DNA of 64,000 nucleotides from Takakia lepidozioides (GCA_030704615.1 CM060731.1:78182001-78246000), one strand, 5' to 3'. Positions 11,114 to 43,130 are shown, counted from the first letter of the stretch. Notes: generated by a model not told the origin, from the letters alone. A program made the numbers and translations.

Positions 11114-11115
11114 CT

Positions 11116-16177: not shown

Positions 16178-16425
16178 GTATATGTTTCTTGGTAGCACTA
16201 GTATTCTTTTGCATGCGATATTTCTCTTTGAATGTCAACGGATTTCTGGACTTTCTCCCTGGAAGCTTCCTTCAGTGATTTATTTGAGACGGAGTTGATT
16301 TTGTCAACCATGGGTGTTCATGGAGTTTAGTGAGGTGCACGTATCAGCATTTGCAGCTACAGTTCACGGGAGAGATGAGAATCATCCATTTGTTGAGATA
16401 CAGAGTGCTCTCACCTTTGCTCGTC

Positions 16426-16443
16426 AGGGTTTAGGGTTTAGGG
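16426..16443 (+). repeat. Interstitial telomeric tract AGGG(TTTAGGG)2 terminating a Penelope pLTR
   Basis: Exact plant telomere repeat at the edge of the repeat unit. The same edge occurs at 18374-18390 and, inverted, at 39174-39194. Confidence 0.75.
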
Positions 16444-16926
16444 TCTATAAAAGAGTGGAGACAAATGTAGCAGTGCAACAGGATGTGGACCGCGAATGCA
16501 CCGGGTGCAATAAGAACACAATCCGAACCAAAAAGTTTTTAGGGAGGACCGGGTATGGGCGCCTTGAAAAAACTTGTAGATATCTAGATCTTGGGAATCA
16601 AAACTATTAGCGTTGATCCAGAGAGACAGAAAGCTAGAAAAGAAGTGTTGTTGAGATGTTCTAAGATGCAACTGCAAAGATATGCAAAGAAGCAAATATA
16701 TGTGATTGAAACTATTTCACTGAGATGACAGGAGAATAATACCCTATCTCTTTTGCTAGAGAATAGACACAGTAGAGAACGACTTAAGATGCTCATATAA
16801 CACGCAACACTCGAGAAGGAGTTTAATGCATGCAATAGATGATAGCAAACCTAAGGCTCAACAGCATAGAAGAAACATTGAGACAAGAACCCTTAGATGC
16901 AGAATAGTAGCCAATCTCTATAAAGT

Positions 16927-16966
16927 CCCAGACTAGTTTCGCTCAACAAGTGAGCTCATCAGTGGG
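16927..16966 (-). ncRNA. Type I minimal hammerhead ribozyme (intact core)
   Basis: CCCA-CUGAUGA-GCUCA cuugu UGAGC-GAAA-CUAG-UC/UGGG: all conserved core bases, paired stems I and II, palindromic stem III. Predicted cleavage after 16931. Confidence 0.9.
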
Positions 16967-17005
16967 AGAGAAATGGAATGAGGTACACAGAGCCTCACCC
17001 CCAGC

Positions 17006-17012
17006 TTATATA
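17006..17012 (-). promoter_or_regulatory. TATA box of pLTR (second copy at 17953-17959)
   Basis: CAGTATATAAGC is conserved in both copies, about 27 nt upstream of an Inr-like TCATTC/TCACTC and about 40 nt upstream of the ribozyme. Confidence 0.6.
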
Positions 17013-17029
17013 CTGCTGTAAGGGGTTGT

Positions 17030-17425
17030 CTCAAATAGGCACAAGACCAAAATAAGTAAAAGAAAGTTATTTCTATGTCTAGAATATGAAAAAGTTCTTT
17101 TTTGTGTCTAAAAAATAACTTCATGCCGAAATAAAAAATAAAAAAAACTTTTAAAGCCTAAAACTGGCTTGACAAAAATCAATAATATCTCTCCAATATA
17201 ATTGACTCTATTGTAACTTAACATAAGCACGATAAGAATACAAAATCCCTCGAGTCTTTTTTCAAACTAAAAGCTTGTAGAAAGAAGGTAATTACAGAAC
17301 TTTAGCAAAGTACTAATGAAGTTTAGGGTGTAGGACGTCCCTAAGGTTTAGAATAGAACACATATGAATGTTCAAGCTTCAGAATCAGAGGGGTCCACTT
17401 GCCTGTCAACTTCTGAGTAGGTTGA
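17030..17425 (-). mobile_element. 5'-truncated diverged Penelope-like fragment (RT C-terminus and 3' UTR)
   Basis: Colinear similarity to 22350-22770, e.g. CAGAACTTT...GTTTAGGGT.TAGGAC..CCC.AAGGTTTAGA...GAATG.TCAAG.TTCAGAA. Confidence 0.7.
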
Positions 17426-17870
17426 CAAAAAATTGGAACTATAAATGTAGGAGTACAACAAATTCGAACCGCGAATGCACCGGGTGCAATAGTAGCACAG
17501 TGCAGACTTAAAAGTTTTTAGTGGGGCCGGTTATGCTCCGAAAAAAACTTCAAGATATCTATTGAAAAACTCAAAGAGATGATTCTGAAGACAAAAAGGT
17601 AGGATATGAGTGATGTTGATATGTTCTAAAGTGCAATTGCAAAGACATGCAAATGACTAAAGTGTATGACTGAGACTGTTTCACCATAAATACAGGATAA
17701 CAAAAACCTATCTCTTATGGAAGAGAAAACACACACTAGAGAACAAACCTAGCAGCAAAGGCAAAACTAAACAGACAATCTAAACAATACAACTGTAAGG
17801 TACAACAACACAACGGAGAAAGTGAGACAAAACACACTTATATGCAGAATACTAGCAAATCTTTATAAGC

Positions 17871-17910
17871 CTCAGACTAGTTTTGCTCAAAACCTGAGCT
17901 CTTCAGTGGG
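17871..17910 (-). ncRNA. Second hammerhead ribozyme copy, probably inactive
   Basis: CCCA-CUGAAGA-GCUCA gguuu UGAGC-AAAA-CUAG-UC-UGAG: the core GAAA is mutated to AAAA and stem I has one mismatch. Confidence 0.8.
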
Positions 17911-18707
17911 AAGACAGAAATGGAGTGAAGTACAATGAGCCTCACCGCCAGCTTATATACTGTCGAAGGATTTTAATATACTGTCGACAGTTGCTTTGAG
18001 ACGTTGCAATCTCTTAAAATCCTTCTTGTATTGTATGAAAGAATTGTCCAATAACTTTTGAGCAGCCTCCACAAAGGTAGGAGTGTGATCCCGTTTGTTG
18101 AAAAACATGCCCACTCGTGGTCTCGAAGAAAAACACTCCCAAATTGTGTACAGCTTCCTACTTTAGAAAGTATCATTGCAGACGGTCGCGACATTAATCT
18201 CCACAGCAGTACTGAAGGGACCCCAACCCTCTTTGCCCATCGTTTATTGCAGTTGTCACCTCTTGCAACATTTCAACCTCTACCTCTTTACTTGCCACTT
18301 TCTACCTGCCCTAACCTAAACCCTAAACCTTAACTCATTCCTTATTCTATAATGAAAAGCTAGTTTGGCAACATTTTAGGGTTTAGGGTTCAGAGTTCAC
18401 AGAAAGTGTCAAAACAAATGTAGCAGTACAACGTGGATGCACCGGGTGCAAAATAAACACAATCCGGGCAAACAAGTTTTTAGGGAGGCTTGTTATGCAC
18501 CCCTGGAAAAATTTCAGATACTGTGAATCAAACCTAAAAAGAGAGATCCCGAGAGACAGGAAACTAGAGTAGAAGTATGTGAGGTGTCCTGAAATGCAAT
18601 TGCAAACCTATGCAAGAGGCAAAAGTGCGTATGAGAACTATTTCACTGGATGCACAGGAGAATATAACCCTATCTCTATTTTGCAAGAGAATGGACACAC
18701 TAGGAAC

Positions 18708-20110
18708 AACACTTTCACTGTAGTGCTGGATGAAGCGCAGGTGTTGGGAAGGAAAAATGTAAATGACTATGAATCCCCCGAGACGAAAGAGCTAAGGTCC
18801 ATTTTTTCTCCGTTGATCAAAGCCCTAGTGGGGCCATCTATGGCGTTGCCAAAGCAGAAAGTATTTGTTGCTGGTACAGGTGTCAGTTGAAGCTGGAAGC
18901 GGACATAGGTTCGCTGATTGCAAAAGAAGAGGGTGGTGGCCCGGTTCAATTTTCTTCTGCTCCATTTTCTTCATGGACAGATGTGCGTCAGGTTCTGAAA
19001 TTCTGCAGCGAGTACCTGAAGCTAGAGGATGATCATATGGAGGACAATGCCCAGTATCTGCTGGAAAAGTTCAGAGGCCGTCGAAGGTGTTTGGTAAGTT
19101 GTGTCGAGCGCCTTCTGAGGAAGGCTGGAGGAAGATGGGATATAACGGTAGTAGACAACTATTTCAAGGAGATCACAATCAACACCAATGACAGCACTTC
19201 CATTTATTATGCTGTGAGCGCTCTGTGTGGAGCAAAAGGAACATTTGTCCTGAAAGAAGAATCATTCAATGGTGCTTCCTTGGTGCAAAGAATAGGAACC
19301 TCCTTTGCCTATGCAGGGAGGGGAGAACATACCGTTTCAACGGACGGAGATATGACTTTGCTCGAGTGTGGCCTTGGACAGCTACACCATTCAACAGGTC
19401 CCCAATTCACTTTCTCTATAGTCGAACCGACAATCCATCATAACATCATGAACTATTTGACGATCAACCATTCATTTGAGAAATCACTTAAAGACTACAT
19501 GGTTGATTGCAAGGATGATCCCAGTGCAATGGGTAGGGCATGGGAGAAACTTTTCACAGTTCATGTGGCCAAGCTGTTTGACGGCACAAAATTGTTGGCC
19601 GATATGTGCTGTTTCAAGGATGCAACCCTGCCTCCAAAATTCGCAAGGGACAAGCCAACGATTACCGGTGAAGGTGAAGGAGTGTGGAGGGAGTCATATA
19701 GGATCCACACCGTAAGTAAATTTCTTGATGCTGAAGAGAAATCTCGTCCGCCATGCCTCATTTTTGACGACAGATCTGGAGCTGATGTTCTTTTTGTTGT
19801 GAGACTTGGGAATTTGAAGATTCCTGTCTTCTGTCAACTGAAGCTGCGATCTGAGGTGCAGTGGGCTAGAGCAGTGGCAACTACAGATCCGGAACAAATG
19901 TACAAGAATAGTTCCGAGTCCAAAACGAGGGCGCTTGCCGCATGCAAAGATGGTTGCATTAGCTTGGTAGTTGCCTATCCTGCAAAGAAGCCAGCTAAAC
20001 TTCAATCTGAATGCCAAGATAATCGTTTAATTGGCTATATTGGACAGGTAGAAGCGGAGGATTTGTTTGACCGCGTGTTATGTGATTTCTTACGTTCTAT
20101 CAAGGAGTGA
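18708..20110 (+). pseudogene. Crinkler/RHS-type P-loop NTPase (C-terminal part) plus PD-(D/E)xK REase-fold module; one frameshift near 18887
   Basis: Walker B VVLDEAQ, then R..FSPL...VAGTG.S, followed by PCLIFDDRSGADVLF...IPVFCQLK (G.D...Q.K REase-like site). The Walker A region is missing and replaced by pLTR sequence. Confidence 0.75.
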
Positions 20111-20752
20111 CGGGGACAAATTTTGTGATGGCTCATGGAGTATTGAGAAGGTGAGATTCATTGGGATACTGGCTCTATTTTTTTGTGTTTGGTGACATTT
20201 CTATATTCTCTTGTTGCTGTCACACCTTTCCATGCTATAGAAATATACTACTAAGTTAGACTGCTTCTGTATTCAACCATGGACCAACTTCAAGAACCTG
20301 TGAAAAAGGGACACAAATTAATGACAAGTATGTTTTCATGAACCAATCAATGAGTTCATCAGCTTTGTGTTACACTGATACGATGGTGTGACAAGTTTGC
20401 AGGATATTCCAGAATAATTTTGTTTCCAGGGGAGTCGGCAGGTCAATTGGTTCAACACCAAGGCTCTATGTTGTAGTGCACTGGACATCAGGTGCCATTG
20501 AGAATTGAGATTAGGTGTGAATATTCTTGAAGTTGTGTTTTGGCTACACTTGGCGGTGAGTCAAGTGAACCAAATAGCGTTAAGATAGACTTCTACTAGG
20601 AGTTGTAGACCAGAGTTTTTCATATCATTGGAAGATGTGCAGGCACTCTGAGTATCAGATTCCTTGTGTGTGTCGACGTTGGCTTCTCTGCAGTGATTTC
20701 CGTGATCACTTTTGATTTTTTGTGATTTACCATTCGGAAATTAAAAACCAAC

Positions 20753-21000
20753 AGTCGGTAGCTCAGTTGGCTAAGTGCACTAAGTGCGACCGAGGCGATT
20801 CTGGGGTCGAATCTTGCTACTGACGGGTGTGGCATACTCTTCTCCCCGGTTCCTGGTCCTGTTCCTATGCCTCGCGGCGCGGGTTACTGTGAAAGAGGTT
20901 ATTTTCTCCTCTCACTGTTAAGGGGCCCTGTCGCTCCGAGGTGTTCCTTTTTTTTTAAAGAAAAAACAATAAAGTAAAACAAAATAAAAGAATAAATACA
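20753..21000 (+). mobile_element. tRNA-derived SINE (partial copies at 21957-22065 + and about 36695-36811 -)
   Basis: A box TAGCTCAGTTGG, B box GGGTCGAATC, 3' end CTGTCGCTCC.AG..TTCCTT shared with the SINE at 13685-13905, and an A-rich tail. Confidence 0.8.
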
Positions 21001-22344
21001 AATACGTGAAGAATACAAATATATGAAGAGGTACAAATACATGAAGAAATCAAAAGTGCTTTTTATTTCGGAACAAAGGGAGTAAAAGATGAAAACCATT
21101 ATTTAGAGTTCACCTTATTTGTGTCACTATGCACTAGTAATGTACAAGTCAAAAAATTTAATGTAAGACATTGATATATAGTGACCTACAAAGTTGCACA
21201 AATAGCTGGGTGATTTTTACATTTTAGAGCCGGGCTGCATGCAGGGGCAGGCTGCCCTTCAATTTTCTTAGAGCCCAACTAAACTGGCAAATCGCAGATC
21301 TCATAACGGGGTACTGCCACCTCGTGCATGTCAGGAAACGGGCCCTCCACTTGCTGACTGGAGAATGTATGTCTTTGCGTTGCAAGGGAAACTCCGCTTC
21401 AAGGTTTTTAGTCGGTGCTCTTCTTTCCAATTCCATACCACCTTGCAATCTTTGCGTTCCTCTCCTGTTTTTCATTTGTTTTTGTTTTGATTCTCCACTG
21501 CAATCACACGCCACATTTTCATGTATTTCGTTTCTGTCACCCCAACATTTCCTCTCCAAGCATTTATTGCTCAATTCCCCGTCTCCAATTGCATAGGGGT
21601 TCTTGCAACCCTAGCTGTCCGTGCATAGGACCATGGACGAGGAGGATGCGGATCTTGATCGTGGCTTTCGTTTCGATCGTTGTTCGGGAAGCGCAAGCGG
21701 ACCAGTCAAAGGCGGAGAGCGGCTGTGCTCGGCGATTTAGGCAGGAGTCCTCATATGCAGTATCACGCTCTGTCTCTCGTCCGTGAGGTATTCCACAATG
21801 GCAATCGTTCGAAAATTGAGCATAGTTTTCCGATTTTGTGATTGAAGTGAAACCTAATTTTTTTGCTGTTGTCAAAAATAAGGTGATCGTACCAAAATAA
21901 GTGATATATTAATCATTGGGCATAGTTACTACTATTAGAATGGTCAAGTTTTTGTATAAGTGCACTAAGTGCGACCGAGACGATTCTGGGGTCGAATCTT
22001 GCTACTGACGGGTGTGGAATACTCTTCTCCCCGGTTCCTGGGTGGTGTCCCGTTCCTACGAGTCTTCTCATATGTTTTTTTTGTTGATATATTTCTGTCA
22101 CATGCACATAGAACTTTCAGATCAGGGCCAGAAACTCACAATGTCAGAAACAAGCTCCCTCTCCACACGAGAGAAGACTCGGTCTGCTCCCAGGCTTGAA
22201 TATGTTGTCCTCTTAGCAGGCTGCAGCACCACTACAGTCAATCAGTATGCAGCCATAAACTGAGATGTAGTGAAGAGACAAGTCATCTTCCTCACTGCTC
22301 CATGTCTGTAACGTAGATTTAAAAACCCAAGTTTCAAATGCAAA

Positions 22345-24016
22345 CCTTATACTGTCGAATAAGTGATGTCTCAAAAAGTGCATAAGATAAAAAGACAACT
22401 AAAAGTATCTTTTAGCCGAGAAAGGTCTTTTTTCTAGAAAAGAAAAAGTTCTTTTTCCAACTTAAGCCTGTAAGCCAAGAATATCTCTTTTCTAAAAAAG
22501 AAAAAGGTCTTTTTCCAACTTATGCCTGTAAGCCAAGAATATCTCCTTTAATATAATTGATTCTATTGTAAATAGGAACGTAAATTCCTCGTTTTTTTCC
22601 AACAAACCATAGGTTTGTCAAAAGATGCTAACTGCAGAACTTTCAGAAGATGCTCATGCAGTTTAGGGTTTAGGACTCCCCCAAGGTTTAGAGCTTTGAG
22701 TATATCGAGAATGCTCAAGTTTCAGAACCACGGGGGCCCGCTTACCCATCAACTTACGAGTGGATTCTGAAGCTAACAGTGTAGCACGTTGTGCGTAGTC
22801 ACATAGACTAAAACACTCTAAGATAAAAGACTTTGGATAGCCTCGAGCACGCAGTTGTTCATAGAACAGTCGTCTGATCTCTGAAAAACCTGCACATGTG
22901 CTTTCTCTCAAAATGTATCGGCGTAGCTCACCAATGATGAATGCTCGTTTTTGGTGTCGCGGATGACAGGACGTCCATAGCTAGTACCGATATCTGTTGA
23001 GTGCCTTCTGATGACATCTCGAAGATAGAATCCCACTATTGACAAAATCAGCTCCCTTGAAGAATTGAATATCAAGAATGTCAATAGTAGAGTCAGAGAT
23101 CACCCTTTGAATGCGAATTGTGGGACTGAGAGAGTTGTATCGATCGAGCTAAGTCTCCAAACTTGCCCGAGATCCTTCCCAGATTCCAAATCCGTCATCG
23201 ATGTATCTCTTGTAGTACAAAGACCATATACCTCTTGCTGCGCAAGCCAATTCTCTTTCTAAGCTGCAAAGAAAGAGACAAGCATACACAACAGCAAAAT
23301 TGCTACCCACTGCAGTGCCTTGGATTTGATGCCAATAGCTCGAGCCAAATTGAAGTTGTTCTCCAAGACCATGTGAGAAAGACTCATGACGAGTCTCCTT
23401 CAAACCGGGGTAACTTGAGCTTGCCGGTAATCATGTCCTTCAATCGTCGAAGCCCGTCCCCAGTAGGAATGCTAGGGTACAATGACTCCACATCAAAGGT
23501 GAATAGAAACACATCTCGAGGAAGTTGTCTACTCGACAGATCTTTCAACAAAGAAATTGAATCTATCAAATGATTACGTTCTTGAAGCAAAATAGGAAAC
23601 AAATGGTACTGTAACCACTTGGATGCGTGTTCAAAAAGGTACCCATTGTACGAACAAATTGGTCTCCCAACCACCACGGGTTTGTGCATTTTGGGCACAA
23701 GATAAAACATGCAGGGTCGGTAGCCCCCTTGGGGCTTGAAAGCCTAAAAATCCTTTTCCTGCTTGTCGATTAATCCCCGCATAAAAGCAGAAGTGAGCAC
23801 TGCATCCAAATCATACTTGAGATTGTCCCATGGAATCTCTGCCACAGATTCATAAACTTGTCCATCGTGGAGTTGGCGGTGTGCCTCATCTATGTACCAA
23901 TCCTTATGCATGATCACCAACCCAAGATTTTTGTCCGCGGGATTGATGACGATGGAGTCATCTGTAGTCAGAGCACGCATTGCGGTCTTGAGATGACCTC
24001 AAATAGAGGACTTGAA
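22345..24016 (-). mobile_element. Endonuclease-less Penelope-like element, RT pseudogene (left copy)
   Basis: PADKNLG, PKMHKP..RPI, FDVESLYPSIP, QIQGTAVGS, RYIDD, LRARGYP; several stops and frameshifts. Confidence 0.92.
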
Positions 24017-24376
24017 AGGGCTCCACCTAGTGAGCGCCTCCGCCTCCTTGAGTGCCTTGGGCACTCAAGGGTGCTTCGACAGAGCGAGCCGGAAAGCGAG
24101 CAAAGAGTGGGGAGCTGTTCCGGACTGCCAACTACCAAAGGGAATTCCGCTGGTTCCGAAGGGGTGAAGGGTTCTTTGGGAGATCGTAGGGGGGACCGTT
24201 ATGCCCCGGTGAGCAGCCGAAGCTCCAAGTTGGCCCGGCGGCCAGGTTGGGAGTTAGGCGCGCGCATCAAGCGAGTAACTATGACTTGAGGGGGGAACTT
24301 ACCGAAGTGAGGTGCGCGACACTTGGTATCAGAGCATAGAGTTCAGTACGCAATCGTCCTTGGGATTGGCCTCATC

Positions 24377-27300: not shown

Positions 27301-28930
27301 TGTCACGGTGAAGTATTTTGCCACGCAGCCCAAGCTGCCCCCAAAACAACTTAGGTGGCAAGATACTTTGGCGGTGTTCGACGTGGATATCCAGTATAAA
27401 CCGGGACGGGACAACGTGGTGGCCGATGCTTTAAGTAGAAAGCAGCAGCTCCTGTTGGTGTACAGAGGTGAGACGACGCTCCAAAGGAAGATCCGGAAGG
27501 CTTGCCGGAAGGATGAGCTAGCAAAGTCCGTGATGCAGGACTTGAGGATGGGGATTAAATCGTAGTTCCACTTGCAAAATGGATTGCTCCGGTATAAGCA
27601 AAAGCGTCTCTACGTGCCGAAGGAAGGGATCAGAGATAGCCTCTTGAGAGAATGCCATAATAACCCGCTTGCGGGCCACGGCGGAGCCAAGCGCACTACG
27701 GCACTCTTGAAGAAAGAGTATTTCTGGCCCAAACTGAGGGAGGAGGCAGAGGAGTATGTCAAGACATGCACCACATGCCAACAAAACCGGAGCGAGTACA
27801 AAAAGCAAGCGGGGCTGTTACAACCCTTGCCGATTCCAGAGGGGACTTGGGAAAGCGTCTCGATGGATTTCATGACTGCTATGCCGCTGTCAAAAGGATT
27901 CGATGCAATCATGGTGGTGGTGGATAGGTTCAGTAAAATGGGCCATTTCATCCCCACCAAGGAGACGGCTACAGCGCAGGAAACAGGTTGACTTTACTTC
28001 GCCCACGTCTTAAAGCATCATGGAGTCCCGAAGGATATTGTCTCGGACCGCGATCCAAAGTTTACGAGTAAATTTTGGAGGGCACTTTGGAACAAGATGG
28101 GGACGAGGCTGAAGATGAGCATCGCCTTCCGACCTATGACCGACGGCCAAACGGAAAGAGTGAATTCCGTAGTGAAGCAGATCTTGCGGAATTACGTGTC
28201 GGCAGACCAAACAGACTGGGTGGAACACTTAGACGAGGCATAGTTCTGTTATAATAACACAAAACACTCCGCAACGGGAGTTTCCCCTTTCGTATTGGTC
28301 TATGGAAAAGCACCTCTGGTGCCGACAAGTTGGGCCGCCCAGGACGTTGAGGAACCGGCAGTAGCGGTGGTACTGGAAGAATGCGAGCATTTGTTGAAGC
28401 TCGCAAAGTACAACATTGCCAAAGCTAGGAAACGGTATGAAAGGCAGGTGAATCGGAAGCGGAGGGAAGTGAAGTTTGAGGCAGGCACGGAGGTCTGGTT
28501 GAACATCAAGAATTTCCGACTATCTCCGGAAGTGAGTCCAAAGTTCGTACCTCCGTATGCGGGACCCTTTCACATCCGGAAGGTGATGAATGAGGATGTG
28601 TAAGAATTGGAGCTGCCGGCAAACAGCAAGGTGCATCCAGTATTCCACGTCTCCCTTTTGAAGCCTTACTTCAAAGATGAAGCGCGTCCGAATCGGCATC
28701 AAGTGTTGCGTCCGCCACCTGTGCTGTTGGATCATGAAAATGAACCTGAGTACGAGGTAGAGGCAGTACTTAAGTCGAGGAGGTTCAAGAACCGAGAAAC
28801 GGAGTATCTCGTCAAATGGAAGGGCTATCATCATGTGGAGGCATCTTGGGTGCATGCCTCAGAAATGGGAAACGCATCCGAGGCGGTTGCAGTTTTCGAA
28901 TGGCGACCTCAAAAGCGGAAGAAGCGTTGA
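24377..28930 (+). pseudogene. Gag-Pol-chromodomain pseudogene of gypsy element 2
   Basis: Gag P.TFEG, CFNCGEPGH, LVDIGASH, YIDD, RNase H, integrase VSMDF and chromodomain EYEVEAVL...YLVKWKGY...SW; multiple stops and frameshifts. Confidence 0.93.
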
Positions 28931-29836
28931 TGGGGACATCAACCTTGGAGCGTGGGGGAGGAAATGCATGCTTAGCCTGGCTTAGCTAGCTTAGGAATCT
29001 GATTGCAAAAACTTGTATTGTACAAAAATTTGTTATAAAAGAAATGGATTCCAAATGTTGTGCGTCCTATTTTGTTTGGAATGGTGATGCATGGTGTGGT
29101 TGGCTAGTGTGTAGGATGCATGCTAGCTTACAAAAGTGGGAGAGGTAAATTGGGTTAATCGTGTGTTTGCGCAGTGCCGAAATCGGGTGACTCCCATCCA
29201 AGGGGCAATGAAACTTGCGCCTTCTTTAGGAGTTCACGTGCTAGTGCGCACCTGGCGCGTGCGCGTACTATAACTGCGCTACCGAGGGGGTTGCCTTGTA
29301 GTGCGGGCTAACACGGAAGCTACCTGCTTCCGTTCACGTACTATAATCGTGTAGCCTCGGGACGAAGTCGTAGTGCGGCTTCGGCGTGTTCCCGTACCTC
29401 AGGCCAGCATTCCAAGGCGGACCCAATTGTAGTGATTGGGGCGCGCGGTTGGTTCAAGGTTATCTTCCTAGTCAAAGAGGGTTCGAGGTGAACCCTTGCT
29501 CAAGGTGATGCCAAAAGCGACATCATGAGCGGTCGCAAGCAATGTTGTTGCAGTAAGGCGATTCGATCCTCGGGGAGGATCGTTCCTTGGCCTCGAAGTA
29601 GGCCAAGAAGAGTGCACTGGGAGGAGCTTGAGAGGCTCCACCCTTGGCCGGGACTTGGAGGAAGTCGGCCGAACTAGCTAGTGGAGAGTAGAGTCAAGTG
29701 TGGGGTTTGGTTCTTTGTCATGGGACGCCATGGTACGGAAACAAACTCCTTGATGTGGGATGCCACAACTTGGATGTTCGTTTCCACAAAATGGACAAGC
29801 CGATGAGGACATCGATTCCCTGTTGGTAGGGGTGTG

Positions 29837-30563
29837 TGTCGCGGCCCTTTGCCTTGAGGGCAGGAGGGTCGGGACACAAGAGGGGCTGCCCCTGTGGTGG
29901 GGGCAGTGGCAGCGATAGGTATGAGGGGCTGAAGCACCCTTGAGTGCCCAAGGCACTCAAAGAGGCGGAGGCGCTCACTAGGTGGAGCCCCGCACACCGG
30001 GTTGCGGTGGGGGTGGCTCCACAAGGGGTGGTGGTAGCTTAGCCGGACTTAGTGGGGGTGGCATAGGACTCACCCTGGGGCGGAGACCTCGTGGTGGGAG
30101 TCGTGGGGAGTCTTGGGACTCATCACGGTCCATAGGGGCCGTGGTGGGTTGGCCAAGACTCACCGCGACTCGTCACCGGGAGTCGAGGGTGTTTGTGGTG
30201 GTTCGCCATAAAATGGCATGGTTGTTTGTGAAACCCCCGCGGACAGCTACAGAAGTATATATAGGGAGTAGTAACCCCGAGAACGGTGCAAGCCCGTTGG
30301 TGACCAAAAACTAGTGAGTAAACGAGCGAGCCGGAAAGCGACCAAAGAGTGGGGAGCTGTTCCGGACTGCCAACTACCAAAGGGAATTCCGCTGGTTCCG
30401 AAGGGGTGAAGGGTTCTTTGGGAGATCGTAGGGGGGACCGTTATGCCCCGGTGAGCAGCCGAAGCTCCAAGTTGGCCCGGCGGCCAGGTTGGGAGTTAGG
30501 CGCGCGCATCAAGCGAGTAACTATGACTTGAGGGGGGAACTTACCGAAGTGAGGTGCGCGACA
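29837..30563 (+). repeat. 3' LTR of gypsy element 2 (727 bp)
   Basis: 7-bp terminal inverted repeat, purine-rich tract upstream, internal TATATA near 30256; the last about 240 bp match 24081-24321. Confidence 0.88.
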
Positions 30564-33310
30564 ACAAACCCTAAGTACTTAAACCTCACTATCAGCAAAT
30601 TCAGGCCGCAGAGCCTTAAGAAACTCAGACCGCCACAGGAAAACCTAAATTATCCCGATGACAAAACCCCGATGACACGGAGAAGGGTTTACCACTGCCT
30701 TTACTTGTGTCTGTTGCTGAAGGAGCATCAACCTGCTTAAAGGTATAGTCTCCTGGGTCCAAGGAATCGCTCCCAAGCAGCAGAACTCCCTCTTGATCAA
30801 ACAAATCCCCATATTGATTTGCATTGTCATCGGGTGTCTAGAGGGCAAGTATGAAAATAAAGTAACCCCACCTTCAAAGGGAGATCGTTAACTGCACGTC
30901 ACTACCCTAACACTAGTCATAGCTAAGAAACAAACTAATCATGAAGAATTGTCCCTTTTCTTTCCACTATTGTTCTATTGTTGTTTTATCTTGAATCTTT
31001 GGCATTCCGTCCTTAAGCTCCCGACGAGATGAATTCAAGGTCAGATGGTGGGGTCAGCTGCAAGATATGCCCAACACCAGATATACTAAGTTAATCGACT
31101 CTATATCTTGGAAACAGGACCGCCCTGTCAAACAAGCTAAGTCTTGGCAGAAAAGAGTAGAAGATATTCTCAAGGACTTGGACCTAGAGCCGCAAGTCTT
31201 GACCCTGCTGGATAAATCTGACTTAGAGGCTGTAGTGTCCAAAGCCATGTCTTTTGCCATGAGATTGTCTGATGAAAATGAAGTTAGGCAGAAAACTTCC
31301 CTGAACCTGTTTCCAGTTAGTGACATGGGGGTGGACATCTTGGATGACCTCAAGGGTCTACCCACTCTCGGCACTAGACTGAAATTTAAACTCAGGGCAA
31401 GAAGCCTACCTTTGAACAACAAACAGAAGCAGAGAGGAAAGGGAGAGTGCAATTGCCCGTTGTGTGGGCAATCTGAAGACAATATTCATTTTCAGATACA
31501 CTGTCCAGGGTTCTCTCACCAATCTTCAAATCTATCAAGGGAATTGTGCTTGTACCCCTGTTTACCAACTTTGAAAGTCTCGAGGCTGATCCGAAAGCCC
31601 AGGCCCTGCTGAGGCCTAGTTTTTGGGCAAATCACTTACAGCAGATTGAAGCTTGTGTGAAGGGATTTCTAGAGGATATATGGAAAACCCGGATTAATTC
31701 TATATATCAAGGTAAGTCTTACTACCAACGTCAGCCCCTGACAGAGGTAGGTTCTATCCCTTTTGTTCCCGCTCAAACTGGGCGCGGGGTCAATGTCCAC
31801 AAGGCTACGGCAAACAACGTCCTATGAGTACAATCTATCTTGAATCTGAGCAGATTCCATCCTATGGAATAAATAAATTATTTGCAAACCCTAAGCACTT
31901 GACCTTCTGTTCATTGACTGCTTGCACTACTCGAACTCAAGACAGAAAAACAAAGAAAAGCAACAAAAGCAAGAGAGAAGGTATAGAAAAGCATGAGGGT
32001 CAATCACAGACCATACTGAAATGCAGAGATTCCTTACAATCCAATCCAATCTTGAATCTGAGCAGATTCCATCCTACAGAATAAATAAATTATTTGCAAA
32101 CCTTAAGCACCTGACCTTGTGTTCATTGACTGCTTAAACTACTTGAACTCAAGACAGAAAAACAAAGAAAAGCAACAAAAGCAGGAAGAAAAGCAAAACC
32201 CTACTACATGCTGTAGGTGCTACAAAATCTTTGAGAAGTATCCCCACAAGAACCCATGTTGTTGAGTTGCATCTATCATGTAGTGCACAACCACAATTCC
32301 ACACATAAATAACAAACAACCGTGTCTTTCAAAGGACCCTCCTCATATTTTACTTGTTAACATGGATCTATCGAATGAATAAACTGCGTGTATCAACCGA
32401 ACACAGGATCACACATGGGATTGGGAGAAGCTGTTGAAACCCTGAGTGCACAACGCAGCCAAGAAACCGAAAAAATTGCAAACATTTGACTCCAAACTAC
32501 GCATTGAACGAATCATTGAACAAATCAGCAACTGCAGCGGGTTCAACAATCAACTGCCCAATTGTCTTGCAAGAATTCAAATGTGCCTGCCCACAATCAG
32601 AATTGCAGACATAAAAACAAACGGGCTCAGACTGCCCTAGGCAACCCATCGACATTCAACCCATCGACATTCAGAGACGTAACAAAAATCAGATGAAGAT
32701 TTGAAACCCGAACTCTGTACATACTCTCGAGATGCCATTGAGCCCGTCCAAAACTGTTACGGATATGATTATGGATGCAAAAAATCCAAGAGAGCTCCAA
32801 AGACACAAAGGAAGGCTCCCTCTCCCTCACAATAAAAATAGAAGTGGATGGAGGACGGCAATCACTCACAAGTGAACTACCAAAATGACGGTTTAGAGTT
32901 AGGGTTTCAGGCCACACAACACTTTAAACCTGCCATCATCTGCCGCAATCTGACCGACCACTGTGCTTCAAGAGATTCAGAAGGGCTTGCCCTCTGACCT
33001 CGCACGAAAAGTGCCTACAAAGGTTCACGGGCAGACATTTCCAAGAAGCAGTGCAATGCATATAATCCTTGTGAAAACCCTTACTCCAAAACGAGTGTGT
33101 CGGCAACCAGAATTCCACATACAAATAATATGCTGCTCATGGGCATTTGAGATCATAATCAACCAAGGATTCTGAAGTCATAACTAATATTATCATTTCC
33201 TCTTCAAAAGGAGCAAATGATCTGGTGACGACAAACTCTAAGTACTTGAACCTCACTATCAGTAAACTGAGGCCGCAGAACCCTAAGAAACTCATACCAC
33301 CACAAGGATC
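30564..33310. repeat. Mosaic of repeat modules also present at 43150-49330
   Basis: 30560-31810 matches 44791-46031; 32313-32656 matches 44180-44516, 46274-46613 and 47801-48120; 32675-33060 matches 47056-47441; 33134-33240 matches 48222-48328. Confidence 0.9.
30998..31815 (+). mobile_element. 5'-truncated non-LTR retrotransposon 3' end (RTE-X-like); second copy at about 45229-46031
   Basis: GIPSLSSRRDEFKVRWWGQLQDM...TRLKFKLRA.SLPL...CPLCGQSED..HF.IHC (C-terminal CCHC of LINE ORF2). TATCTTGAATCT flanks both sides. Confidence 0.7.
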
Positions 33311-33385
33311 AGGTGCTGTAAAAACTTTGGATAGCCTCGAGCACGCAGTCGTTCATAGAACAGTCGTCTGATCTCTGAAAAACCT

Positions 33386-36300
33386 CATGCTTGTAGAATT
33401 TCTTCTCCTAAGCTTGTGAATTTCTTCTCCTCTTTGGCCGTTCGACCTTCCCTTGATGCAAGCATTCAATCAGCCACTCTTGCTTTCCATAACACTTTAC
33501 AAAAAGCCTTCATCAAGGCTCATGTGGAGGTGTTGGCAGAAGCAGAAACCACTTTGAGCAAATCATTTGATCTTTTCATTGCTCGACTCCAGGAGATCAG
33601 ATCCCATGTGGACGTCTCTTCTTGTCTTGACAAAGATGAGGACTCTATTTGGATTTTCGAGGAGCTTGAGTTTGTATGCACTGAAGCTACCAAGTCTTGG
33701 TTTGCTGGAATCTCTTATTTTTGTGCTAACCACAACTTGGCAACCACTGTGAGGGAAACGGCTTTGCGTAAAAAGAATCGCGCTAAGGATGCCGCCATGG
33801 CAGATGCTGATGTTCTTCCGTGCGAGCCTTCCATTGCCGAGCTTGTTAGGAAAGAGGTGCAGAAGCAATTTTCCTCCAAAGGGAATAACTCTTCTCTCTC
33901 CCCTAAACAACGACCAACCTACAAGAGACACTTCACCAAATTCCAAAGCAAGTTCTTTCAAGCAACAGGGAAATGGACAGCAGCGGAGTGGGATTGCTCG
34001 CATCCGTTCCGCTGCATCGCGTTTCTCTTCTCCGAGCAAATCCGCCCTGCATTCTCAGACCCCTCATGGTTTTGGCAAACAAAAGTCGGGGCAAAGCCCA
34101 CAACAGAAGCCCAAAAAGAAGGTAACTTGGGTAGGATCAAATCGAAAAGAGCCCGCAAGCTGTTTTGGTGGCCGTTGAAGGATGTAGAGGCCTATAAGCT
34201 TTTTCTTTTCTCTGGCAAGAGAGTCTCTCAGGTAGAGAATAGGTTAACCAATGTGACCATCCACAACATGGCCAATCGACCACTCTCTTGTTTTGAAAAG
34301 AAGCTTTTAGGCTTAGGTTTGAGCTTCATTCCACATCCTACTCCTCCGTCTACTACTTCTATTCTTGATGCTTATGAGGCTTTTGCTCGATCTTTACGTC
34401 TTCGACATCACTCCCGTGATGCTAGAGATAGACCCATTCCTCCATTTAGAGTCCCTAACCCTTCTTGGGATCAGTGTGTACGGCTTCCTGCTTTAGAAAG
34501 TATCATTGCAGACGGTCGCGACATTGTAAAGGCTCGCTTCAAGGATGTGGTTCGCCTGCCTTCAAGTCCTCTATTCGAGGTCATCTCAAGACTGCAATGC
34601 GTGCTCTGACTACAGATGACTCCATCGTCATCAACCCCGCGGACAAAAATCGTGGGTTGGTGATCATGCGTAAGGATTGGTACATGGATGAGGCACACCG
34701 CCAACTCCACGATGGACAGGTTTATGAATCTGTGGCAGAGATTCCATGGGACAATCTCAAGTATGATTTGGATGCAGTGCTCATTTCTGCTTTTATGCAG
34801 GGATTAATCGACAAGCAGGAAAAGGATTTTTTGGCTTTCAAGCCCCGAGGGGGTTACCGACCCTGCATGTTCTATATTGTGCCCAAAATGCACAAACCTG
34901 TGGTGGTTGGGAGACCAATTTGTTCGTACAATGGGTACCTTTTTGAGCACGCATCCAAGTGGTTACATTACCATTTGTTTCATATTTTGCTTCAAGAACG
35001 TAATCATTTGATAGATTCAATTTCTTTGTTGAAAGATCTGTCGAGTAGACAACTTCCTCGAGATGTGTTTCTATTCACCTTTGATGTGGAGTCATTGTAC
35101 CCTAGCATTCCTACTGGGGACGGGCTTCGACGATTGAAGGACATGATTACCGGCAAGCTCAAGTCACCCCGGTTTGAAGGACTCGTCATGAGTCTTTCTC
35201 ACATGGTCTTGGAGAATAGCTATCTTCAATTTGGCTCGAGCTATTGCCATCAAATCCGAGGCACTGCAATGGGTAGCAATTTTACTGTTGTGTATGCTTG
35301 TCTCTTTCTTTGCAGCTTAAAAAAAGAGTTGGTTTGCGCAGCAAGAGGTAGGACTCGTCATGAGTCTTTCTCACATGGTCTTGGAGAACAACTATCTTCA
35401 ATTTGGCTCGAGCTATTGGCATCAAATCCGACGCACTGCAATGGGTAGCAATTTTGCTGTTGTGTATGCTTATCTCTTTCTTTGGAGCTTAGAAAGAGAG
35501 TTGGCTTGCGCAACAAGAGGTATATGGCATTTGTACTACAAGAGATACATCGATGACGGATTTGGAATCTGGGAAGGATCTCGGGCAAGTTTGGAGACTT
35601 GGCTCGATCGATACAACTCTCTCAATCCCACAATTCGCATTCAAAGGGTGATATCTGACTCTACTGTTGACATTCTTGATATTCAATTCTTCAAGGGAGC
35701 TGATTTTGTCAATAGTGGGATTTTATCTTCGAGATGTCATCAGAAGGCACTCAACAGATATCAGTACTTGCCATGGACGTCTTGTCATCCGTGACACCAA
35801 AAACGAGCATTCATCATTGGTGAGCTACGCCGATACACTTTGAGAGAAAGCACATGTGCAGGTTTTTCAGAGATCAGACGACTGTTCTATGAACGACTGC
35901 GTGCTCGAGGCTATCCAAAGTCTTTTATCTTAGAGTGTTTTAGTCTATGTGACTACGCACAATGTGCTACACTGTTAGCTTCAGAATCCACTCGTAAGTT
36001 GATGGGTAAGCGGGCCCCCTTGGTTTTGAAACTTGAGCATTCTCGATATACTCAAAGCTCTAAACCTTGGGGGAGTCCTAAACCCTAAACTGCATGAGCA
36101 TCTTTTGAAAGTTCCGCAGTTAGCATCTTATGACAAACCTATGGTTTGTTGGAAAAAAACGAGGAATTTACGTTCCTATTTAGTTCGTGCTAAGTTACAA
36201 TAGAGTCAATTATATTAAAAGAGATATTCTTGGCTTACCGGCATAAGTTGGAAAAAAGACCTTTTTCTTTTTTAGAAAAGAGATATTCTTGGCTTATAGG

Positions 36301-36410
36301 CTTAAGTTGGAAAAGAACTTTTTCTTTTCTAGAAAAAGACCTTTCTCGGCTAAAAGATACTTTTAGTTGTCTTTTTATCTTATGCACTTTTTGAGACATC
36401 ACTTATTATA
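33386..36410 (+). mobile_element. Endonuclease-less Penelope-like element (longest copy); frameshifted ORF about 33416-36203
   Basis: Helical N-terminal region, HNMA...EKKLLGLGLSFIP (PLE N-terminal motif), ADK, all RT motifs, thumb S.HP...LRARGYP. Ends KTRNLRSYLVRAKLQ* with no GIY-YIG domain. Confidence 0.92.
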
Positions 36411-39370
36411 AGGTTTGCATTTGAAACTTACAGACATGGAGCGTTACAGACATGGAGCAGTGAGGATGACGACCTTCACTACATCTCAGTTTATGGCTGC
36501 AAACTGATTGACTGTAGTGGTGCTGCAGCCTGCTAAGAGGACAGCATATTCAAGCCTGGGAGCAGACCGAGTCTTCTCTCCTATGGAGAGGGAGTTTGTT
36601 TCTGACATTGTGAGTTTCTGGCCCTGATCTGAAAGTTCTATGTGCATGTGACAGAAATATATCAACAAAAAAAGCATATGAGAAGACTCGTAGGAACGGG
36701 ACACCACCTAGGAACCGGGGAGAAGAGTATGCCACACCCGTCAGTAGCAAGATTCGACCCCAGAATCGTCTCGGTCGCACTTAGTGCACTTAGCCAACTG
36801 AGCTACCGACTGTTGGTTTTTAATTTCCGAATGGTAAATCACAAAAATCAAAAGTGATCACGGAAATCACTGTAGAGAAGCCAACGTCAACACACACAAG
36901 GAATCTGATACTCAGAGTGCCTGCACGTCTTCCAATGACATGAAAAACTCTGGTCTACAATTCCTAGTAGAAGTCTATCTTAACGCTCTTTGGTTCACTT
37001 GACTCACCGCCAAGTGTAGCCAAAACAAAACTTCAAGAATATTCACACCTAATCTCGATTCTCAATGGCACCCGATGCCCAGTGCACTACAACACACAAC
37101 CACGCCTTGGTGTTGAACCAATTGACCTGCCGACTCCCCTGGAAACAAAATTATTCTGGAATATCCTGCAAACTTGTCACACCATCGTGTCATGCAGTGT
37201 AACACAAAGCTGATGAACTCATTGATTGGTTCATGAAAACATACTTGTCATTAATTTGTGTCCCTTTTTCACAGGTTCTTGAAGTTGGTCCATGGTTGAA
37301 TACAGAAGCAGTCTAACTTAGTAGTATATTTCTATAGCGTGGAAAGGTGTGACAGCATCAAGAGAATATAGAAATGTCACCAAACACAAAAAAATAGAGC
37401 CAGTATCCCAATGAATCTCACCTTCTCAATACTCCATGAGCCATCACAAAATTTGTCCCCGTCACTCCTTGATAGAACGTAAGAAATCACATAACACGCG
37501 GTCAAACAAATCCTCCGCTTCTACCTGTCCAATATAGCCAATTAAACGATTATCTTGGCATTCAGATTGGAGTTTAGCTGGCTTCTTTGCAGGATAGGCA
37601 ACTACCAAGCTGATACAACCATCTTTGCATGCGGCAAGCGCCCTCGTTTTGGACTCGGAACTATTCTTGTACATCTGTTCCGGATCTGTAGTTGCCCACT
37701 GCTCTAGCCCACTGCACCTCAGATCGCAGCTTCAGTTGACAGAAGATAGGAATCTTCAAATTCCCAAGTCTCACAACAAAAAGAACATCAACTCCAGATC
37801 TGTCGTCAAAAATGAGGCATGGCGGACGAGATTTCTCTTCAGCATCAAGAAAATTTACTTACGGTGTGGATCCTATATGACTCCCTCCACACTCCTTCAC
37901 CTTCACCGGTAATCGTTGGCTTGTCCCTTGCGAATTTTGGAGGCAGGGTTGCATCCTTGAAACAGCACATATCGGCCAACAATTTTGTGCCGTCAAACAG
38001 CTTGGCCACATGAACTGTGAAAAGTTTCTCCCATGCCCTACCCATTGCACTGGGATCATCCTTGCAATCAACCATGTAGTCTTTAAGTGATTTCTCAAAT
38101 GAATGGTTGATCGTCAAATAGTTCATGATGCTATGATGGACTGTCGGTTCGACTATAGAGAGAAAGTGAATTGGGAACCTGTTGAATGGTGTAGCTGTCC
38201 AAGGCCACACTCGAGCAAAGTCATATCTCCGTCCGTTGAAATGAAATGGTATGTTCTCCCCTCCCTGCATAGGCAAAGGAGGTTCCTATTCTTTGCACCA
38301 AGGAAGCACCATTGAATGATTCTTCTTTCAGGACAAATGTTCCTTTTGCTCCACACAGAGCGCTCACAGCATAATAAATGGAAGTGCTGTCATTGGTGTT
38401 GCTTGTGATCTCCTTGAAATAGTTGTCTACTACCGTTATATCCCATCTTCCTCCAGCCTCCTCAGAAGGCGCTCGACACAACTTACCAAACACCTTCGAC
38501 GGCCTCTGAACTTTTCCAGCAGATACTGGGCATTGTCCTCCATATGATCATCCTCTAGCTTCAGGTACTCGCTGCAGAATTTCAGAACCTGACGCACATC
38601 TGTCCATGAAGAAAATTGAACCGGGCCACCACCCCCTTCTTTTGCAATCAGCGAACCTATGTCCGCTTCCAGCTTCAAAAAGCTGACACATGTACCAGCA
38701 ACAAATACTTTCTGCTTTGGCAATGCCATAGATGGCCCCACTAGGGCTTTGATCAACGGAGAAAAAATGGACCTTAGCTCTTTCGTCTCGGGGGATTCAT
38801 AGTCATTTACATTTTTCCTTCCCAACACCTGCGCTTCATCCAGCACTACAGTGAAAGTGTTGTTCCTAGTGTGTCCATTCTCTTGCAAAACAAAGATAGG
38901 GTTATATTCTCCTGTGCATCCAGTGAAATAGTTCTCATACGCACTTTTGCCTCTTGCATAGGTTTGCAATTGCATTTCAGGACACCTCACATACTTCTAT
39001 TCTAGTTTCCTGTCTCTCGGGATCTCCCTTTTTAGGTTTGATTCACAGGATCTGAAATTTTTCCAGGGGTGCATAACAGGCCTCCCTAAAAACTTGTTTG
39101 CCCGGATTGTGTTTATTTTGCACCCGGTGCATCCACGTTGTACTGCTACATTTGTTTTGACACTTTATGTGAACCCTGAACCCTAAACCTAAAATGTTGC
39201 CAAACTAGCTTTTCATTATAGAATAAGGAATGAGTTAAGGTTTAGGGTTTAGGTTAGAGCAGGTAGAAAGTGGCAAGTAAAGAGGTAGAGGTTGAAAGGT
39301 TGCAGAGGTGGCAACTGCAATAAACGATGGGCAAAGAGGGTTGGGGTCCCTTCAGTACTGCTGTGGAGAT
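34561..39370. repeat. Right arm of large inverted duplication
   Basis: Reverse complement of 18197-24016, lacking about 1.1-1.2 kb between the two SINE copies. Confidence 0.95.
37462..38861 (-). pseudogene. Second copy of Crinkler NTPase-REase module with several frameshifts
   Basis: Translations nearly identical to 18708-20110, split over several frames. Confidence 0.8.
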
Positions 39371-41045
39371 CCTTACATAATCTTGTATATTTGTGAGCGA
39401 TCACCACTTGTATTTAAGAGTGATCAGGTCAACCGAATGATCACCCAATTTAGAATGACCTGCCAAGCTTCGTGATACAATTATGCTAAATGCCCTTGTT
39501 TGCATGTAGACCTCGCCCTGGTTTGGAGCTTTGGAGGTCGGATCTCTCAGAGCTCGTTGTGGTTGTTTATGTTTCATATTCAATTTTTTAGTAAGCTAAA
39601 AAGGTATTGGTATTCTATAGAATGAGCTTGGAAAATTGAATGTAATGTTCAAGGCAGTTAATTTTGGCATGTTCTCTTAGTTACTCATTGTGCAAGTTTT
39701 TGGTGCAGGATTCTAGGGACTCTTGGCAATTCTTGGTCAGTTCTACTCATTTATGTTTCTACCCTTGTCTACTTTTACAGGCTAAGGGAGTCTGGCTCTT
39801 GCACCAAGTCAAGTTGAAGACTAAATTTCATTAAGTTCCTTCTACATGATTTGAGGGCCATCATTCACTTTTCCCGATTGTGGTTTCACATCCTTGGGCA
39901 TTGTGGGTCCAATGAGAAAGCCTAAAATTTGTACGGTCAATTATAGAAATTGTATCATTCTACTGCTGCTTATACTTAGCATGGTTAGTACATGCAATAA
40001 ACTTCTGAACCTCTCCACATGTCTTGAACTTTGGGGTTCGAATTTGTGAGTTCAGAGGGCTATCTTTCAGAGTGTCCTTTGCAAATATTATCTTGGTGCG
40101 ACTGATGGATTACCTTTAAGTAGACACTTGTAGGGGTTGGCTTGTTAGTGCCTCCTAGTTAGAGTTTCAAGAAATCGTGGTCTGATTCATTATAGATTTT
40201 AATCTAAACAAACCACCAGAGTCCTCAAAAGTTTTAGGGTTTAGGGTACTTCACCCTAAACCCCCCATTTCGATTCAGCATTGAAGCAATATCTTTGTTT
40301 TTCATAAACTTAGTGAAATTTTTAGCATTTGTAATTTATAGCATGAAACAACGTTGTTGTCAAATTGAAAGTACTGCTCTATAAACAGCCTCTGGTTTCA
40401 TACACAATGAAGTGCCTTTCTCTTTTCTTGTTTTGTTCCGAGGAATAATAATGACACATCAACAATAATGAATACCTTGTTTACTCGAGCGAAAACTGAA
40501 ACAGAAGTTTTAGTTTTGTCTTTATCACATCTACATTATCTGATGGAAAGCTAAGCTTGAAGAGTGAACTGTGAGTTCAACATGGAATCACGATTACATG
40601 GGAAGCCCAGAAACAGGGATGTTATCAGAATTGGTGAAACCACCTATGCAGTTGCGGAGGTCAAATCCTGCCTCAATGGCAACATTCAACATGACGTGCC
40701 GGAGAACAAGATAAGAGTGCATCAAAGGGATTGCTGACTCGAATTTGAAATCATGGAGTCACTAACTGAGGCTGTCATGGCCATCTGCAGAGTCCAAAAA
40801 ATCCAGTAAGGCCAACAAAGACATCTCCTAAACATTAAGAAAAACAGTGCTGTCATTGTACTGTACAGATCTATTGGACCTTGACCAAAAAAACCTCTAT
40901 ACACTCTGGGTACAAGAATCTCTGGTTCATTCTCCTAGAGTACATAGATGGCAGAATGAGGTTCATGGGTTTCCAAAAATTAAACCAGCAACACTTGTCT
41001 CCAAGAACTAAGTTCTTCGTAGCAACATTCTGCACATATCAAAAT

Positions 41046-41684: not shown

Positions 41685-43130
41685 TCAGCAAACATCAAGG
41701 TCACAAAATGAGAGATGAATGAGGATAAACCCACACACTGATAGCCAAGGATGTTGTAATGCCTGTGATGAACTGAGTTGTTTGTCAGTGAGCTTCCTTA
41801 TAAAGTCTTCAGCATGTGCTGTCCTTGCAACGGGGATATACTCATCCAGGAGTTTGCCAACACTATACATGTCTGAAAAGGGCGTATACTGGTTGCCCTC
41901 ATACATCTCCGGACACCAGGCTGAGAAAGGCTGAAATCCATCAAACAATTTGAAAGGAAAATCTGCTACAGATTCGAGGTCGATGAGCATGAAATCTGTA
42001 TCTGAAAGGCGCACAATATTTGGGAGTCGGATATCCCTGTGCACCAGGCCCGCACTGTGGAGGATACATAAGGCTTGGCAGACACACTGAGCCATCCACC
42101 TGCATTCCTCTTCAGACTCCAATCTGCATTGGTATCCAAGAGGACCAAACTCAACTCTGTAGGATCCATGAGCAGTTTCGAAAGGCAATGCCACCATCTG
42201 CGGCAGAAACTTACATGTTCTCGCAGCAGCATAAGCCCTCTTTATCATGGTAATATCCGTCCCCTGGTCAGCACTATAACTAGAAAAGTCTCTAATGTGC
42301 TTCGCCACTTTGTCATCATAAAAGTAAATACTCCTCCTTCCATCGGTGACTTTTCCAAAGAAAACATGGCACGGCGACCTGGGACTACCGGAACAGAGTC
42401 ATGCATTTTCTTCATTAGCTGGAAGGCATAGCCTACGCTGAGTAAAAATGGCAGCGATCAGAAATATCTGATAGGTTAAGACGTCGACCCACTGGATACA
42501 ACTCCTTCGGACCTCTCCTACCGATGTACACCCACTGAAATTCAGTGCCTGCTGCTATGTAGCCTAGAATAAATTTCAATTCCCCATAAAACATCGGATT
42601 AAGCGACCTCATCTTAGAACGAAGATCGATTTCAGCTGCAAGCAAGTTGCCAACCTTGTCTTCACCTACTAGGAAGGTGCATCCAAAGGCTATGCCAATC
42701 GTATCAGGCCTTGTCCTGTGTGCAGTAGTTTGGGTGAAACTGTACCGCGCCCTTTCAGTAGAATTGAACGAAAACGTGACCTTAAAACCGGCCACATATT
42801 GCTTGAAAAAGCCAAAGAACTCTTGCAAGCCGCCGCATGCAACGAGGAACGATGTTTGTATCTCGGTGACTATCTCCTCAAGTTGGCGCGATAGGAAGGC
42901 TCCCACTAAACAAGGAAGTCTTGAACCATCTGTCTCGATTAAAACATTCGCCGCCAACTCGGGCATTGTTGTTGATACAGACTCATAGGTCTGCGGCGTT
43001 ACAGGAAGCTTCCGATGCTGCTCAGGGAACAATACCTTTTCAAGACCGGCCTTTTTTGGGGGAGCTCAGGTAGCTGTGGGAGCAGCATGTACCTGATCCA
43101 AGCTTCGGAACGATCATTGCGATAACCTGC
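41685..43130 (-). pseudogene. Crinkler/RHS-type REase plus protein kinase module (gene B C-terminus), frameshifted
   Basis: RPDT....FLVGEDK...DLRSK...YG...ILGYIAAG (PD-ExK), then LHSAGLVHRDIRLPNIV...LIDLE...SDMYSVGKLL...ALQHPWL. Confidence 0.82.

Follow-up and report, generated by a model that had tools for sequence, protein, structure and literature searches.

The locus described here lies in a 64,000-nucleotide stretch of the genome of the moss Takakia lepidozioides (GCA_030704615.1 CM060731.1:78182001-78246000), which we call the window and whose positions are counted from its first letter. Its central feature is a decayed Penelope-like element (PLE) without an endonuclease, located at 33386-39194 on the plus strand (copy B) and carrying a large insert of host DNA, part of which derives from a Crinkler-type gene. 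An inverted duplicate of most of this composite, copy A, is found on the minus strand at 18197..24016. The locus is internal, at least 12 Mb from both ends of the sequence piece.

The coding region of copy B (33386..36088, plus strand) consists of an N-terminal part and a reverse transcriptase (RT), broken into four frame-shifted pieces (33416-34609, 34465-35448, 35360-35794 and 35840-36088, all on the plus strand). RT motifs of the PLE type are recognisable at 34882 (PKMHK), 35080 (FDVESLY), 35260 (GTAMGS) and 35546 (YIDDGF), and the reading frame stops at 36088, within a telomere-like stretch at 36076-36089, without being followed by a GIY-YIG domain. The frame-shifted coding pieces were queried singly, unjoined and unmended; none of them matched a nuclease family, and Pfam gave zero matches for the RT pieces as well as for the Crinkler pieces of the window. 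A word search with a 327-amino-acid (aa) query piece retrieved 36 RT relatives, chiefly from conifers, Ginkgo and metagenomes, and the precomputed families listed for many of them are RVT_1, DUF8422 and HTH_animal. GIY-YIG is not listed for any of the 36, in a search that is limited by its length filter. Together with the CCCTAAA-type tract at the 3' end, the RT motifs and the missing GIY-YIG bear out what had been proposed from the sequence alone, before any database was consulted (the sequence-only reading), namely that this is an endonuclease-less, telomere-tailed PLE.

The RT of copy B is further disrupted by a 172-bp tandem duplication (35178..35522, plus strand), which breaks the frame and occurs in this copy only. 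Immediately outside the 5' edge of the element lies an inverted patch (33319..33385, minus strand), the reverse complement of RT positions 35860-35927 (98.5% over 68 bp). A related nuclease-less PLE is present in the sequence L008 (4921-9161); its upstream side shows an extended CCCTAAA array together with a hammerhead core (5364-5388), two reading frames come next, and it likewise ends without a nuclease.

The arrangement of the 3' end can be read against older, canonical termini of the same family, which form a reference chain at 16428..17962 on the minus strand. This chain comprises a solo terminal repeat (17962 to 17420) and a 5'-truncated canonical unit (17423-16428), both on the minus strand, the latter with the TATA motif, a hammerhead at 16936-16962, the tail and a telomere tract. 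The canonical unit aligns to copy B at 35985-36398 and then again at 38859-39189. In copy B, the 3' untranslated region (UTR) of the PLE, which includes a 59-bp tandem repeat (36217-36336), runs up to a TATA-like motif on the 5' border of the terminal repeat (36089..36412, plus strand). From there on, 2.45 kb of host DNA (36413..38861) stand in for about 224 bp of repeat sequence, the hammerhead part among them, after which the last ~310 bp of the repeat, its tail (38862..39172, plus strand), and a degenerate reverse-complement telomere tract of the CCCTAAA type (39173..39194, plus strand) complete the PLE 3' end. Fine alignment places the left junction at 36412/36413, directly after the TATAAG motif, and the right junction at ~38859-38861. 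The stretch between these two points measures 224 bp in the canonical unit, hammerhead core (16936-16962) included, and 2.45 kb in the composite. The sequence-only reading had set the break at the TATA position of the terminal repeat (about 36410) and had proposed that foreign DNA replaces the ribozyme-containing part of that repeat; both statements agree with the junctions and with the canonical stretch.

The hammerhead core is thus present in the canonical unit and in L008, and it is replaced, hence absent, in both copies of the composite. It was identified by pattern alone, with a pattern count not above chance, and Rfam reports no hammerhead in 16000-40500 at E values up to 1. The solo terminal repeat starts with TCGACAGTATA, which is part of a short palindrome and is kept at the junction of copy A (three matches found, 0.48 expected). 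As the 3' terminal repeat has its 5' edge at TCGACAGTATA, the host DNA starts about 10 bp inside that edge. The short-palindrome boundary of the repeat is a recurrent joint. The window is strongly enriched for telomere tracts of the CCCTAAA type, with 18 of them as compared to an expected 0.47, and reverse-complement tracts sit at the 3' ends at 39173-39194, 18375-18395 and 16423-16443.

The host piece reads on the minus strand, in the order of a coding fragment, a stop codon with 3' UTR and ~650 bp of spacer, and a tRNA-like head. The coding fragment of copy B (37465..38858, minus strand) extends from residue ~225 of 692 to the end of a Crinkler-type protein and contains a Walker B motif (38829-38849) and motifs of the restriction endonuclease (REase) type (37772-37789 and 37724-37741), all on the minus strand. 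The stop codon lies at 37462-37464, and the Crinkler-type gene continues on the minus strand into its own 3' UTR and a downstream spacer (36811..37464). These are followed by the head of a putative tRNA-derived short interspersed element (SINE), with A and B boxes, at about 36700..36810 on the minus strand. In copy A the fragment (18711..20107, plus strand) has the same truncation point, a single frameshift near 18887, a Walker B motif at 18720-18740 and an REase motif region at 19784-19849, both on the plus strand; copy B has several frameshifts, among them further ones near 37695, 37850, 38157, 38237 and 38458. The tblastn alignment begins at residue 225 in both copies and covers residues 225-692 of the 692-aa moss proteins, and residues 1-224, which include Walker A, were absent by tblastn from the whole window and not only from the two copies. 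The closest relative, L006, shares 82% DNA identity, has an intact and uninterrupted 692-aa frame, and its DNA similarity to the cargo begins exactly at the junction. Since the half that contains Walker A is missing and the remainder is frame-shifted in both copies, the fragment cannot make an enzyme. Between the copies, the fragment has accumulated nine non-synonymous and five synonymous substitutions, a pattern close to neutral. The cargo is a dead gene fragment.

Full-length relatives of the cargo protein have both Walker motifs, A and B, as well as a C-terminal D...QxK motif, the latter conserved in the alignment, and the best matches come from Ceratodon purpureus and from moss-like metagenome contigs. 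A profile of the moss family reaches proteins of Rhizophagus and Funneliformis (Glomeromycota) with an E value of 2e-25 and 91% query coverage. The protein P0044 scores 31.3 bits on PF20147, the Crinkler N-terminal domain (cut-off 24.6), and the Atlas lists a Crinkler cluster with a score of 0.93. The moss homologues have no match to PF20147, and the name Crinkler-type nucleoside triphosphatase (NTPase)-REase module is justified by the profile homology to Crinkler-domain proteins. An antisense NTPase-REase sequence in the insert, as the sequence-only reading had it, is therefore supported by the profile match to proteins with a Crinkler N-terminal domain, and the notion of a Crinkler module as cargo holds for the identity of the piece, but what is carried is only a 5'-truncated, frame-shifted fragment. 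The D...QxK motif, putatively of the REase type, is present in both copies; the AlphaFold model of the full-length homologue is poor (mean predicted local distance difference test, pLDDT, 51). A candidate header exon at 15805-16278 matched nothing, and a header exon is unconfirmed beside either copy. The label SINE stands on the tRNA-like head and its A and B boxes (minus strand, ~36810 to 36700) as its sole basis, but neither ARAGORN nor Rfam called a tRNA in 16000-40500. A 66-bp block of the 3' UTR (37292-37357) recurs at L001 (12351-12416) and L002 (11502-11529) and is 85-96% identical across mosses including Ceratodon.

Six loci of the Crinkler-type family were available from other mosses, three from Ceratodon (L001, L004, L005), two from ENA contigs (L002, L003) and one from a JGI contig (L006). 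The DNA around the gene, 10 kb on each side for five loci and a contig of only 3.8 kb for L006, contains no PLE RT at any of the six, so that the co-location of this PLE family with Crinkler modules, which the sequence-only reading proposed as a check, finds no support at these related loci. At L003 (9481-15243), a gene of the same family and of intact length is flanked by short TTTAGGG tracts (9481, ~12180, 12508 and 15208).

Copy A corresponds to positions 34561-39370 of copy B in inverted orientation and has 1.1 kb of extra DNA at 20858-21956. The two copies are 94-97% identical, both junctions of the host DNA included, and differ by many small indels in short repeats and homopolymers. The claim that the whole composite exists twice is hence correct as regards an inverted copy with both junctions, but copy A is without the first 1.2 kb of copy B (33386-34560) and without the 172-bp tandem duplication, and it alone has the 1.1 kb, which lies between 85-bp repeats, an 85-bp partial second copy of the SINE-like head flanking it. 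Beyond the telomeric tract the copies continue to share 176 bp of flank (39195..39370), which contains a telomere tract in inverted orientation (39234-39254) and an inverted tail of weak similarity; the inverted tract suggests an older tail. The duplication endpoints are unrelated to PLE termini, since the common block passes the tract and ends at no recognisable PLE terminus, which is one of two conditions that the sequence-only reading had itself named as jointly contrary to its proposal.

The outer end of copy A is joined to a 51-bp patch (18145..18195, plus strand) that has the same sense as its source in copy B (34475-34525) and runs opposite to the rest of the copy. This source lies 35 bp upstream of the inner end of the block in copy B, and the patch has the appearance of sequence templated during break repair or replicative template switching. 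Twin priming was ruled out as its origin, as the inverted piece is on the 3' side of the block and not on the 5' side; a circular intermediate is ruled out by the orientation of the patch, and an inversion in place would require a breakpoint coinciding with the end of the duplicated block. The inner end of copy A adjoins 65 bp, in inverted orientation, of a young retroelement at 24082-30563. Its 5' truncation is therefore secondary, the junction with a fragment of another retroelement having erased the original 5' extent. Neighbouring direct duplications are 95-98% identical. Copy A is thus probably a DNA-level duplicate: the shared 176-bp flank and the inverted 51-bp patch are best explained in this way, and for this step it was the alternative offered by the sequence-only reading, and not its main proposal, that fits best. 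Three inverted patches, each derived from the adjacent element, are found at element junctions (33319-33385, 24017-24081 and 18145-18195), and they may share one mechanism, e.g., snap-back or template switching.

We consider that a history in which host DNA was captured once at the boundary of the terminal repeat and a DNA-level inverted duplication followed later, leaving the fossil composite of today, has about an even chance of being correct. The composite would have been built once, when ~224 bp with the hammerhead, i.e., the promoter-proximal part of the terminal repeat, were lost about 10 bp past the palindromic TATA motif and a contiguous 2.45-kb host piece took the place of the lost stretch. 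Capture could have occurred through template switching during reverse transcription of the PLE or through break repair at the palindrome. Later, at a distance corresponding to ~1-3% divergence, an inverted duplicate of positions 34475-39370 would have arisen at the DNA level, as we infer from the junctions, within a locus where other segmental duplications are of similar age. The copies would then have diverged separately by means of the 172-bp tandem duplication in copy B, the 1.1-kb difference between 85-bp repeats, frameshifts and small indels. PLEs of this class are copied onto free DNA ends by way of an RNA tail complementary to the telomere repeat. Copy B itself is a dead element, a fossil rather than an active carrier, with its ribozyme gone and its RT broken.

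Several points weigh against this history. Its capture step is reached by inference only, and template switching by the RT and break repair are indistinguishable within it; if RNA was copied, the antisense cargo would require an antisense template. A resident gene hit by two insertions is possible, because the window belongs to a cluster of Crinkler-type genes that apparently includes the kinase module at 41685-42308, and a read-through transcript could also give the shared 176-bp flank. Moreover, the Crinkler fragment (37462-38858) is 1.0% diverged between copies A and B, as compared to 3.0% for the rest of 34561-39370 (Fisher p = 2e-5). This low divergence does not stem from CpG sites, and the fragment nonetheless holds seven indels; gene conversion with another paralogue is one possibility.

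The strongest alternative starts from a resident Crinkler-type gene. A full PLE would have inserted downstream of it, a separate 5'-truncated tail would have bridged a break in its coding region, deletions would have removed the terminal repeat of the first PLE and the N-terminal half of the gene, and DNA-level duplication would have followed. We regard this account as possible but rather doubtful. A kinase that is a candidate Crinkler-type module is present in the locus (41685-42308), short 5'-truncated tails and solo repeats of the PLE family lie nearby, and such elements are known to attach to DNA ends (PMC8557442). The RHS genes of trypanosomes, which are relatives of Crinklers, are known retroelement targets (PMC5289972), and they resemble the composite in that a retroelement breaks into the 5' half of an NTPase gene of Crinkler/RHS type within a repeat-rich multigene region; however, one specific site is reused by ingi/RIME in RHS genes, whereas the composite offers a single junction common to duplicated copies. 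The account is strained because nowhere in the window does the N-terminal half of the gene occur, and it demands that the cut in the first PLE fell precisely on the 5' edge of the terminal repeat and that both PLE parts happened to be in the same orientation and collinear, with only ~224 bp missing between them. Likewise, the gene-then-kinase order of L001 and L003 is not kept here, and the kinase of the window is not the orthologue of theirs, for which reason synteny with the moss kinase neighbours was rejected. Altogether, a resident gene requires more coincidences than capture.

Another possibility, and one we consider unlikely, is that the composite was a chimera competent for retrotransposition, whose RNA ran from the PLE through the antisense fragment to the telomere-complementary tail and was copied by a PLE RT onto DNA ends, copy A being such a retro-copy. 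The 3' tail and the telomere tract needed for priming are retained, copy A is 5'-truncated relative to copy B, and in rotifers host genes enclosed by PLE repeats can be mobilised by these elements (PMC3846280). On the other hand, 176 bp beyond the telomeric tract are common to both copies, the geometry of the 51-bp patch is wrong for target-primed or twin-primed copying, and the 5' end of copy A is a secondary junction with another retroelement. In addition, the known copies are all linked, the ribozyme region is gone and the RT broken in both, and the DNA around the six related moss genes is free of PLE RT. Independent copies with differing flanks are lacking in the window, where the two copies share the 176 bp past the tract, and exact junction searches in metagenome contigs found none, a result of little weight as the species is probably absent there.

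The broadest form of this idea holds that nuclease-less PLEs duplicate and shuffle Crinkler-type modules in moss genomes, that copy A was made from read-through RNA, and that the composite is or recently was at work. We find it improbable. The sequence-only reading had favoured a version in which the PLE duplicates and moves effector modules; this is unsupported in view of the shared 176-bp flank, the 51-bp patch, the dead cargo, the loss of the ribozyme and the six moss loci without PLE RT. That errors in assembling a repeat-rich region produced the second, inverted copy or the junctions, as the many small indels between copies A and B in short repeats and homopolymers might suggest, is very improbable, because the copies differ, by 1-5% substitutions, the 172-bp duplication and the 1.1-kb indel, and sit in different unique flanks, which makes a collapsed or duplicated assembly unlikely.

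The layout of the composite, in which host DNA separates the body of the element from the 3' repeat, is that of Pen1_Av from the rotifer Adineta vaga, where a host spacer of 0.9-1.5 kb occupies this position, and the repeats of Pen3a from the rotifer enclose a host gene that was mobilised (PMC3846280). Within the window, the PLE family is represented by the one duplicated composite and by older units free of any spacer. Both Pen1_Av and Pen3a_Av share with the Takakia composite ~1-2.5 kb of host DNA between body and 3' repeat, and a terminal repeat that opens with a short palindrome; host genes can sit between the repeats (PMC3846280). Yet the rotifer elements have GIY-YIG, target-site duplications and a full 3' repeat, and their mobilisation is proven by an empty site, while the Takakia composite has no nuclease, a truncated repeat, an antisense dead cargo and no independent insertion shown. 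Endonuclease-deficient PLEs are known to attach to telomeric overhangs by means of reverse-complement telomere repeats that adjoin hammerhead motifs (PMC8557442; PMC4209133). The Takakia element resembles the Athena, Coprina and Selaginella elements and the bdelloid terminons in its RT without nuclease, its reverse-complement telomere repeats at the 3' end, the hammerhead in the terminal repeat of its relatives and its chains of 5'-truncated units (PMC8557442; PMC4209133). Terminons, in contrast, are giant, located at chromosome ends and equipped with extra reading frames in sense orientation. Being internal, ~5.8 kb long and loaded with an antisense, truncated gene fragment, the composite does not qualify as one.

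Beyond PLEs, further mechanisms are relevant for comparison. In LINE-1 3' transduction, host DNA from downstream of the element's own 3' end is carried along in sense orientation, and in endonuclease-independent LINE-1 insertion, complementary DNA (cDNA) patches breaks and leaves 5'-truncated pieces without target duplications. By analogy, neighbouring host DNA could have travelled in the RNA of a retroelement, or a break could have been closed with its cDNA; the host DNA of the composite is, unlike in LINE-1 transduction, internal to the terminal repeat and antisense. Plant double-strand-break repair is also known for filler DNA, whereby a short deletion is exchanged for ectopic genomic DNA on the kilobase scale with few-base microhomology. 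The swap of a short stretch for kilobase-scale ectopic DNA in the composite is of this kind, but filler capture is generic and has no link to retroelements, and it would leave the position of the junction at the repeat boundary unexplained unless the palindrome is fragile.

If it were true that retroelements attaching to DNA ends carry Crinkler-type pieces, this would open a route for the diversification of these modular genes in plants and would constitute a plant counterpart of rotifer gene mobilisation by Penelope elements. The evidence supports less than that, i.e., one capture, a dead fragment in a dead element and then ordinary DNA duplication. What it does offer is a clean, datable case, from a plant, in which host DNA became trapped at the edge of the terminal repeat of a Penelope element; host DNA between PLE body and 3' repeat is already known from Pen1_Av, and new here is the plant example.

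The right flank of copy B (39195-40250) contains two further G-strand telomere tracts (39234-39254 and 40233-40247), which suggest a chain of oppositely oriented telomere-tailed units from a different or much older family. At 41685-43032 on the minus strand, 2.3 kb from copy B, a protein-kinase frame (41685-42308; Pkinase, E 3e-11) is accompanied by an upstream frame without a family, and this region may be another Crinkler-type module. Between the two copies, 24017-30563 contains the young, GC-rich retroelement mentioned above, with gag, protease and RT matches and with 240-bp terminal direct repeats that are 99.6% identical and without the usual TG start; ahead of the element (24082-30563) stand 65 bp that repeat part of its interior (29931-29990) in inverted orientation. 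Several direct duplications with 87-98% identity link 30560-33308 and 43780-48329, and some of them end at telomere-like motifs (e.g., 48324-48337). Further upstream, at 5425-11415, a Ty3/gypsy-type element encodes a 1368-aa polyprotein (6390-10496, minus strand) and is flanked by 300-bp repeats that are 99% identical.

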